The notes: a model not told the origin generated them from the letters alone. DNA of 64,000 bases from Stylophora pistillata (GCF_002571385.2 NW_019218027.1:345820-409819); one strand, 5' to 3'. Positions 46,301 through 49,300 are shown, counted from the first letter of the stretch. Translations and numbers: made by a program.

Positions 46301-49300
46301 AGAAATCAGTTGAAAAAACTTTCACTTGCAGCAAATGCCCAACCTTATAGGGTATTCGATAGTTATCTTAAAATAAAAAAAAGTGAGTAAAAAATGTTGC
46401 ATGTTGGCCAGTGTAAAGTTTAGTTGAAGAGTTAAAAGACCCAGTAAGTGGTTTTGAGGGTGAGTCCTACATTAGTACTACAGTACTACATGTTGGTCAA
46501 AATGAGAATAACTAAATGGTAAGTCAAACAACAAACATATGAAATACATATATATGAACTGCGGTTATGAAACGTATATGTGCACGATCCTTCGCAGTAA
46601 AGCACTATTTAAGCAATAGTGAAAATCAGACCTGAAAAAAGTTCAGGCCTGTACGGGATTCNATATATGTATTTCATATGTTTGTTGTTTGATTTATCAT
46701 CTACGGGTTTATGTCGAATTAATTTGATGGCCTGCTCCCAGTTGGCTTGTTAGCTCAATTGGTAGAGCGCTGCACTAGTATCGCAGAGGTCAGTGGTTCG
46801 AATCCCGTACAGGCCTGAATTTTTTTCAGGTCTGATTTTCACTATTGCTTAAATAGTGCTTTACTGCGAAGGATCGTGCACATATACGTTTCATAACCGC
46901 AGTTCATATATATGTATTTCATATGTTTGTTGTTTGATTTATCATCTACGGGTTTATGTCGAATTAATTTGATGGCCTGCTCCCAGTTGGCTTGTTAGCT
47001 CAATTGGTAGAGCGCTGCACTAGTATCGCAGAGGTCAGTGGTTCGAATCCCGTACAGGCCTGAATTTTTTTCAGGTCTGATTTTCACTATTGCTTAAATA
47101 GTGCTTTACTGCGAAGGATCGTGCACATATACGTTTCATAACCGCAGTTCATATATATGTATTTCATATGTTTGTTGTTTGATTTATCATCTACGGGTTT
47201 ATGTCGAATTAATTTGATGGCCTGCTCCCAGTTGGCTTGTTAGCTCAATTGGTAGAGCGCTGCACTAGTATCGCAGAGGTCAGTGGTTCGAATCCCGTAC
47301 AGGCCTGAATTTTTTTCAGGTCTGATTTTCACTATTGCTTAAATAGTGCTTTACTGCGAAGGATCGTGCACATATACGTTTCATAACCGCAGTTCATATA
47401 TATGTATTTCATATGTTTGTTGTTTGATTTATCATCTACGGGTTTATGTCGAATTAATTTGATGGCCTGCTCCCAGTTGGCTTGTTAGCTCAATTGGTAG
47501 AGCGCTGCACTAGTATCGCAGAGGTCAGTGGTTCGAATCCCGTACAGGCCTGAATTTTTTTCAGGTCTGATTTTCACTATTGCTTAAATAGTGCTTTACT
47601 GCGAAGGATCGTGCACATATACGTTTCATAACCGCAGTTCATATATATGTATTTCATATGTTTGTTGTTTGATTTATCATCTACGGGTTTATGTCGAATT
47701 AATTTGATGGCCTGCTCCCAGTTGGCTTGTTAGCTCAATTGGTAGAGCGCTGCACTAGTATCGCAGAGGTCAGTGGTTCGAATCCCGTACAGGCCTGAAT
47801 TTTTTTCAGGTCTGATTTTCACTATTGCTTAAATAGTGCTTTACTGCGAAGGATCGTGCACATATACGTTTCATAACCGCAGTTCATATATATGTATTTC
47901 ATATGTTTGTTGTTTGATTTATCATCTACGGGTTTATGTCGAATTAATTTGATGGCCTGCTCCCAGTTGGCTTGTTAGCTCAATTGGTAGAGCGCTGCAC
48001 TAGTATCGCAGAGGTCAGTGGTTCGAATCCCGTACAGGCCTGAATTTTTTTCAGGTCTGATTTTCACTATTGCTTAAATAGTGCTTTACTGCGAAGGATC
48101 GTGCACATATACGTTTCATAACCGCAGTTCATATATATGTATTTCATATGTTTGTTGTTTGATTTATCATCTACGGGTTTATGTCGAATTAATTTGATGG
48201 CCTGCTCCCAGTTGGCTTGTTAGCTCAATTGGTAGAGCGCTGCACTAGTATCGCAGAGGTCAGTGGTTCGAATCCCGTACAGGCCTGAATTTTTTTCAGG
48301 TCTGATTTTCACTATTGCTTAAATAGTGCTTTACTGCGAAGGATCGTGCACATATACGTAAATGGTAAGTATTACACATTATAATTTATGGATTCTGCCA
48401 TCCATTTCAGTTGTCATTTATCAAAAGATATGAACTCACCATAGGCTTCTCTGAAGCTCACTAGTGCACACCCTTCGTTTCCCAAATCGACACTCAGGAC
48501 CTCGGCCCCACCTTCTTTCTCCATGTAACATCCAAGAGTAGTTTTTGTAGTTTTCTTATCTAGGCCCCTGACAATTAGCTTCCTTGTGTCAACATGAACT
48601 TTACACCGGGACTGTTTCAGAGTGACTTTCAGTTGTGCTTCATCAAGAGTGAGATTTCCTTTGTTAACAACTTCTAAAGCACCTTCAGGACAAAACATAG
48701 AGTAAATTGGCATGTGAAATGCGGCCTGTTTATTGAATTTGTGTGATATATGTCATTTCCACTCGCACACAACACTTCATTACCAATCCAATATAGTGGC
48801 TAAAACACTCGATCAAAGTATCTCGAGGGTATTTAGCACTCGTCATTAAGAATAACGCTCGGGGTTTGAAAATGAAAAGAACCCTTGCCTAAAACCTTTT
48901 ATCTAAAAATTTTCCTGTACTCACTGTCAGCAATTGTGAAAGTAATGACAGCAGTTCCTTGGTCTGGAGTATGATCGATGCTTTGGACGTCACCTCCCCC
49001 GGATCGTTTGTTGTTCTCGAAGAAATTCACGATGGCATCTTTGGTTGTTGTCGCAGCAAGTCCAGTCACCTCAATGGTGCGTGACTCGTATGTTTCTGCT
49101 GCGGGTAAATAACTCCTTATCTTTATGGCTTTGACCTTCAATATGGCTCCATCGAGAGTATGTTCCCCGCGTCCTAAAACTCCATCCGTACCTTAAAATA
49201 TATAAAATAGTTAGCACTAAAAGAAAAACCCTTGCCAAACATCTTTTTATTTGATAAATATTCCTATACTCACTTTCAACAGTTGTGAATGTTATGACAG

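Follow-up and report, generated by a model that had tools for sequence, protein, structure and literature searches.

Tandem 245-bp units with a tRNA-like module in Stylophora pistillata: a probable hammerhead-free passenger of Penelope-like elements

We analysed a stretch of 64,000 nucleotides from the coral Stylophora pistillata (GCF_002571385.2 NW_019218027.1:345820-409819), referred to here as the window, in which a block of tandem 245-bp units is located at 46513-48370 and each complete unit carries a tRNA-like module. The block consists of two arms of unequal length, which are joined 5'-to-5' and enclosed by a target site duplication (TSD). In our judgement it is probably one insertion of a very abundant, recently active, non-autonomous and hammerhead-free passenger of Penelope-like elements (PLEs), copied from a multi-unit RNA in the tRNA sense. 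The features of the block are given below, with unit position 1 set at window position 46663; A and B denote the two terminus sites of the family, and Pol III stands for RNA polymerase III.

46513-46524, no strand: left TSD copy, 12 bp, TAAATGGTAAGT; the final T could alternatively be unit position 30
46525-46661, minus strand: B arm (inverted), 137 nt, from unit 29 at its outward end to unit 138, with one mismatch at 46641
46662, no strand: single assembly n, precisely at the 5'-to-5' join between the arms
46663-48359, plus strand: A arm (direct), six complete 245-bp units followed by unit positions 1-227; its outer end is the A terminus of the family
46744-46816, plus strand: first of seven tRNA-Thr(AGT)-like modules, found by ARAGORN and Rfam
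46989, 47234, 47479, 47724, 47969 and 48214, plus strand: start positions of the remaining six tRNA-Thr(AGT)-like modules
46820-46826, plus strand: T7 run of the Pol III terminator type, inside the hairpin CCTGAA/TTCAGG and present in all units
46862-46905, plus strand: site-A hairpin with the stem ACTGCG/CGCAGT, the loop of which holds site A (unit 225-228); repeated at each unit junction
48359-48370, no strand: right TSD copy, TAAATGGTAAGT; the opening T could alternatively be unit position 227

For the A arm, Tandem Repeats Finder reported a period of 245, 6.9 copies, 100% matches and 0 indels (46663-48359). The B arm starts at the B terminus of the family (unit 25-30) and can be followed from unit 29 through a 47-nt tail, site A, both hairpins and the T-run to unit 138, within the tRNA-like module. 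The initial annotation of this locus had claimed about seven identical 245-bp units plus an inverted partial unit, a perfect 12-bp TSD, an internal tRNA cassette in each unit, and the lack of both poly(A) and a hammerhead core, and all of these held on closer analysis. No poly(A) was present in the window block. No ribozyme family of Rfam was detected at E<=10 in the unit and its junction, where tRNA and chance matches were the only ones, and the hammerhead box CUGANGA was absent on both strands.

The tRNA-Thr(AGT)-like module occupies unit positions 82-154 and scored 48.9 bits in each unit (ARAGORN, Rfam), the unit as a whole being non-coding with a GC content of 40%. The A and B boxes of the module were intact; its cloverleaf was not, as one pair of the anticodon stem and two pairs of the T stem were non-standard, and the module in isolation folded no better than shuffled sequence. 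The RNA of the whole 245-nt unit was predicted to be highly structured (-77 kcal/mol, z=-4.7). The T7 run begins 3 nt past the module, and because of this position a Pol III transcript would end about 60 nt short of site A and could not be the template for insertion. As read from the sequence, the position of the T7 run argues against the module as a promoter in the style of short interspersed elements (SINEs) and against Pol III as the maker of the template. The ratio of summed RNA to DNA depth (three RNA runs vs. one DNA run) was about 4-7 times higher over the module and the following stretch than over the spacer before it, which is a hint only, as such depths are no measure of expression. 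Among diverged copies, unit 73-204, which extends from the module through the two hairpins, was almost invariant, and the parts around A and B (unit 205-245 and 1-72) occurred in alternative versions that were combined as mosaics. The ACUGCG/CGCAGU hairpin and the GGAUCGUGCA motif are features of unit region 180-245 plus 1-60, and the stem of the site-A hairpin was retained in a diverged subfamily.

The block belongs to a large family. Exact searches of the assembly yielded 8,843 matches for a 22-mer of the tRNA-like core and 1,441 matches for a 28-mer across the site-A unit junction of this subfamily, each with 0 matches for the reversed-pattern control; an exact search of metagenome contigs with the core 22-mer gave 0 matches. 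The family therefore comprises about 8,800 units, about 0.5% of the genome, and the units were near-identical between loci. To analyse the termini, 35 other loci were fetched and unit coordinates were mapped onto each, the insertions containing 1 to 12 or more units. Their outer ends fell into two tight clusters, A at unit 223-228 and B at unit 25-30, while the inner or 5' ends were scattered. Copies at site A ended with ...ATATACGT and those at site B with ...GTTGTTTG, the B terminus (about unit 28) being the A terminus (about unit 226) with an extension of 47 nt. Fixed 3' ends together with ragged 5' ends indicate target-primed reverse transcription of a tRNA-sense RNA, and the template is a tRNA-sense RNA exceeding one unit. 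The window copy was typical in this respect, with its right end at 227 and its left end at 29-30.

In the usual layout, two arms were joined 5'-to-5' with their 3' ends (tRNA sense) facing outward, one at A and the other at B. This A+B pairing was observed in 12 of the 13 two-armed copies, including the window copy (P=0.003), and an inverted 5'-truncated copy stood beside head-to-tail copies in the window and at 12 other loci. Furthermore, among the unselected first 100 matches of the core, neighbours on opposite strands within 1 kb were arranged as (-,+) in 15 cases and as (+,-) in 1 (P=5e-4). The inner junction was unlike in each copy and consisted of a direct join, of 1-10 nt of filler, or of short back-and-forth pieces. 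At L062:2489-2538, a filler of 50 nt is made up of alternating short pieces resembling the sequence just 3' of site B (inverted) and of site A; to judge from its sequence, it looks as though the enzyme had begun and aborted synthesis several times close to the two start sites.

Exact TSDs of 11-15 bp (median 12) flanked 12 of the 13 two-armed copies, that in the window included. Their AT content was 78% against a background of 60.5% (P=1e-5). One-armed or gap-broken arrays served as an internal control, their longest shared flank strings being merely 3-7 nt. The left TSD of the window also matches the unit sequence directly 3' of site B at 9 of 12 positions, which was not seen for the other TSDs and may reflect either slight pairing between primer and template or chance. 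With regard to the initial annotation, the mid-unit start and end of the array had been taken for arbitrary points, and these ends turned out to be the two canonical termini of the family. Fixed termini had not been foreseen there; the expectations that stood were that none of the termini would lie at the 5' end of the tRNA and that TSDs would be present, as they were in most composites. The proposal of a single retro-insertion by a Penelope-type enzyme from a multi-unit, tRNA-sense template is supported by the TSD, by the inversion of the 5' arm, by the absence of a poly(A) tail and of a hammerhead, and by the tail with two termini found throughout the family.

The assembler was unable to cross these arrays, as seen from the n at the arm junction, so that the number of units, the inner 5' ends and the complete identity between units are all contingent on the assembly. 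Among loci L031-L065, a single n also occurred at the inner or 5' junctions of L042, L044, L054, L056 and L061, and N-runs were present at those of L038, L052, L060 and L063. The assembly breaks at these repeats, and unit counts as well as some of the one-armed arrays without TSDs may be artefacts.

These observations closely resemble what has been reported for PLEs. A PLE protein, when purified, was reported to cleave both strands of the DNA and to extend each of them (Frangieh et al. 2024, PMC11167929). In the same study, reverse transcription started internally at two adjacent RNA sites that were not homologous to the target, the tail being the stretch between them, and the protein preferred AT-rich DNA, with the hammerhead being dispensable for insertion (PMC11167929). 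PLE insertions in genomes include partial tandems, an adjoining inverted 5'-truncated copy, and a tail of 30-40 bp that is often found at one end only (Craig et al. 2021, PMC8557442). In the 245-bp family, every structural feature of PLE-type insertion that could be tested was found, namely the two-terminus tail, the inverted copy and the AT-rich target with a TSD. If the in vitro findings are transferred to this family, the reverse transcriptase (RT)/GIY-YIG protein of a PLE would mobilise the unit in trans, sites A and B would be the two internal start sites of the RT, and the 12-bp TSD would correspond to the stagger between the nicks. Each nicked DNA strand would act as a primer at an internal position of the RNA, one strand at A and the other at B, and the two halves of a protein dimer perhaps each serve one start site; the rule of one A and one B end per insertion suggests a separate start site for each dimer half. 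Both cDNAs would then extend back across several units, halt at random and be joined 5'-to-5' through microhomology or filler. In the window, the left strand would have been primed at B to give the short arm and the right strand at A to give the long arm, with duplication of the target TAAATGGTAAGT. As for the template, a read-through or RNA polymerase II (Pol II) multi-unit transcript is more likely, and a circle is less likely.

Two further routes to this architecture were considered. Indels among the units were located in short AT and TTG runs and in the T-run, with none at A or B, so the tandems are unlikely to have arisen by template jumping from one monomer RNA to another. Snap-back synthesis as the origin of the inverted arm was ruled out, the arms being unequal in length and terminus.

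In line with the PLE interpretation, a Pfam scan of the genome gave at least 1,590 GIY-YIG candidates of the PLE type, many of them as (-)(+) pairs. Nevertheless, several points weigh against it. A helper PLE sharing sequence with the unit was not found, the comparison with a single PLE locus (L066) giving one unconvincing match of 56 nt at 70%. At 47 nt, the tail exceeds the length of 30-40 nt given for PLEs, and no TSD was found at at least nine one-armed arrays having real flanks, which may be assembly mis-joins or may represent another resolution of the insertion intermediate. The 35 loci were picked as best matches, so that young copies are over-represented, and the RNA evidence consists of assembled Logan contigs, which lack ends, strand and circularity. 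A tblastn search with protein pieces of L066 detected no PLE in the fetched loci or in the window. The L066 locus itself has an open reading frame (ORF) that is interrupted by a 1,036-base N-run, and behind the ORF the PLE 3' untranslated region/pseudo-long terminal repeat contains a canonical-looking type I hammerhead core at L066:3960-4010 (CUGAAGA, helix II, GAAA).

The alternative closest to this interpretation keeps the PLE machinery and replaces the linear template with a ribozyme-free circular RNA of 245 nt, which the RT would copy in rolling-circle fashion from two fixed start sites, with RNase P/Z cuts at the tRNA-like module plus a ligase taking the place of the hammerhead. Arms that reach 12 or more exact 245-bp units with regular unit junctions would suit such a circle, as would internal RT starts, which require no RNA 3' end, and the strong structure of the unit RNA (z=-4.7). 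Coral hammerhead retrozymes of similar size give circular RNAs (circRNAs) and arrays of up to 62 units (PMC7229834). In addition, 5 of the 32 arm 5' ends fell at unit 155-160, just beyond the module (post hoc P~0.001), a hint compatible with some templates having been cut at the tRNA-like 3' end. However, several arrays carried mixed variant units within an arm (types 7,7,0; 27,28,7,0; 18,0,0,18,0), the first two of these orders including both 247-bp and 245-bp units, and such arms are impossible from one monomer circle without later change. Cutting by RNase P/Z would excise the tRNA-like module, yet all units have it. Linear multi-copy RNA already gives PLE tandems (PMC11167929), and since these arise from multi-copy transcripts with internal initiation, a circle is unnecessary. 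Contigs from RNA libraries did run through site A into the next unit, as a circle would predict, but tandem DNA copies exist and make junction-spanning RNA uninformative; the circle itself was not observed. We therefore regard the circular template as rather unlikely.

Explanations outside the PLE class are less likely still. A tRNA-derived SINE mobilised by a long interspersed element (LINE), with the inverted arm made by L1-type twin priming and the tandems by template jumping or later unequal crossing-over, would share with the observed copies the 11-15 bp TSDs, the 5' truncation and the 5' inversion, all of which are also known from LINE-type target-primed reverse transcription, and the intact A and B boxes are those expected of a SINE. 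Yet a tail of the poly(A), microsatellite or LINE-like type is absent, the ends reading ...ATATACGT and ...GTTGTTTG; the termini lie at unit ~226 and ~28, whereas the tRNA-like head is at 82; and since the T7 terminator comes 3 nt behind the module, the element cannot be covered by a single Pol III transcript. Twin priming starts at variable internal sites, in contrast to the two fixed termini, one on each arm, of 12 of the 13 copies, and tandem blocks lie within single TSDs, monomer insertion not being the rule. We consider a LINE-mobilised SINE very improbable on these grounds. An origin at the DNA level, be it by expansion of a satellite, as a DNA transposon of the foldback type whose arms consist of tandem repeats, or by amplification of a genuine tRNA-Thr gene cluster through unequal exchange, appears to us improbable in the extreme. 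It could account for identical tandem units, foldback-like inverted arms and a terminator positioned as in real tRNA genes, but the copies, about 8,800 units in all, are scattered over thousands of places with TSDs, the two outer ends are offset by 47 nt and are not mutual inverted repeats, the inner junction differs from copy to copy, and the cloverleaf has three broken pairs. Mobilisation by a PLE from a linear multi-unit RNA thus remains the reading that we favour.

The window is animal DNA and contains PARP14-like genes (Macro, KH and WWE domains) on its minus strand. The exon nearest to the block is as follows.

48440-48682, minus strand: host exon of a PARP14-like gene, covered by a 6.6-kb contig from a polyA RNA run, with the 5' splice site GTGAGT at 48439-48434

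From the end of the RNA contig at 48440 and the GTGAGT next to it on the minus strand, the insertion is placed within an intron, about 70-80 nt from the exon, and its long arm is antisense to the host gene. Both flanks of the block were single-copy in the assembly. The paralogous PARP14-like intron was 66-75% alike and too diverged to serve as an empty site. In RNA run X20, a 308-nt contig aligned from 48359, the first base of the right TSD, rightwards to 48528, with its preceding 138 letters unaligned; it could be an empty-site form free of the insertion. On the gene side, tandem repeats of about 349 bp, 81-90% alike, occupy 48880-51516 on the minus strand and are probably repeated exons of the PARP14-like gene.

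The window contains two other elements of related appearance. The first, at 54642-54985 on the minus strand, belongs to a second and unrelated tRNA-like family and comprises about 1.2 head-to-tail units of 285 bp inside a 12-bp TSD, GAATGAAATCTC. Its tRNA-Ser(AGA)-like module at 54684-54756 has two broken acceptor pairs and is followed by a T5 run. Since this element shares the pattern of partial tandems within a 12-bp TSD, tRNA-like passengers may recur in this genome. The other is a small two-armed element at 22320-22555 with an 8-bp TSD, TTCTTATG, in which the right arm exceeds the inverted left arm by about 57 nt, an asymmetry reminiscent of a tail. For this element Rfam reported a palindrome only, and a hammerhead was not detected at E<=1. 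In L035, another copy of this small element directly adjoins the array at its A end, indicating that the two families are mutually nested.

Among the classes of eukaryotic retroelements, PLEs are the least understood, and two-start insertion on both strands was shown in vitro only in 2024, for one lizard element. The 245-bp family offers thousands of near-identical natural insertions that show the PLE signature at the level of single bases. If the PLE interpretation is true, a PLE passenger can do without a hammerhead, and the theme of passengers built on small-RNA genes, known from SINEs, Cassandra and Helenus/Ajax, would extend to the PLE class. For the host, the family has meant entry into gene introns and the dispersal of thousands of modules with a Pol III promoter and terminator.

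Pol III boxes combined with a hammerhead occur in Sm-alpha of schistosomes. A full-text literature search found no description of a tRNA-bearing PLE passenger. The nearest relatives in form are the non-LTR retrozymes of animals (LTR, long terminal repeat), which are tandem hammerhead repeats of about 170-400 bp, and of about 220-240 nt in the coral Acropora millepora (Cervera & de la Pena 2020, PMC7229834), and for which a derivation from PLEs as non-autonomous elements has been proposed (Li et al. 2026 preprint, 10.64898/2026.07.22.740005). The 245-bp family is similar to them in unit size, low GC (40%), head-to-tail arrays, TSDs longer than 4 bp, non-coding nature, coral host and presumed PLE helper. 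However, it has neither a hammerhead nor another known ribozyme, and carries a tRNA-like module and Pol III terminator instead; circRNA was shown for the coral retrozymes, whereas the present evidence comes from DNA and assembled RNA contigs. With PLEs and their derivatives (MRC1 and the non-autonomous Chlamys of Chlamydomonas) the family has in common partial or multiple tandems, an inverted 5'-truncated copy, a tail at one end and AT-rich targets. It differs from PLEs by the lack of an ORF and of detected shared PLE sequence (one locus compared), by the tail of 47 nt instead of 30-40 nt, and by its small-RNA-gene module. Non-autonomous LTR elements built on small-RNA genes have been described as Cassandra (5S) and Helenus/Ajax (tRNA-like) (Kojima 2024, PMC10886601). 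Like these elements and tRNA-derived SINEs, the 245-bp family combines a Pol III-type small-RNA module with a non-autonomous retroelement. In contrast to them, its partner class would be PLE, not LINE or LTR, its module is internal with the terminator immediately after it, and its copies form tandem and inverted blocks.
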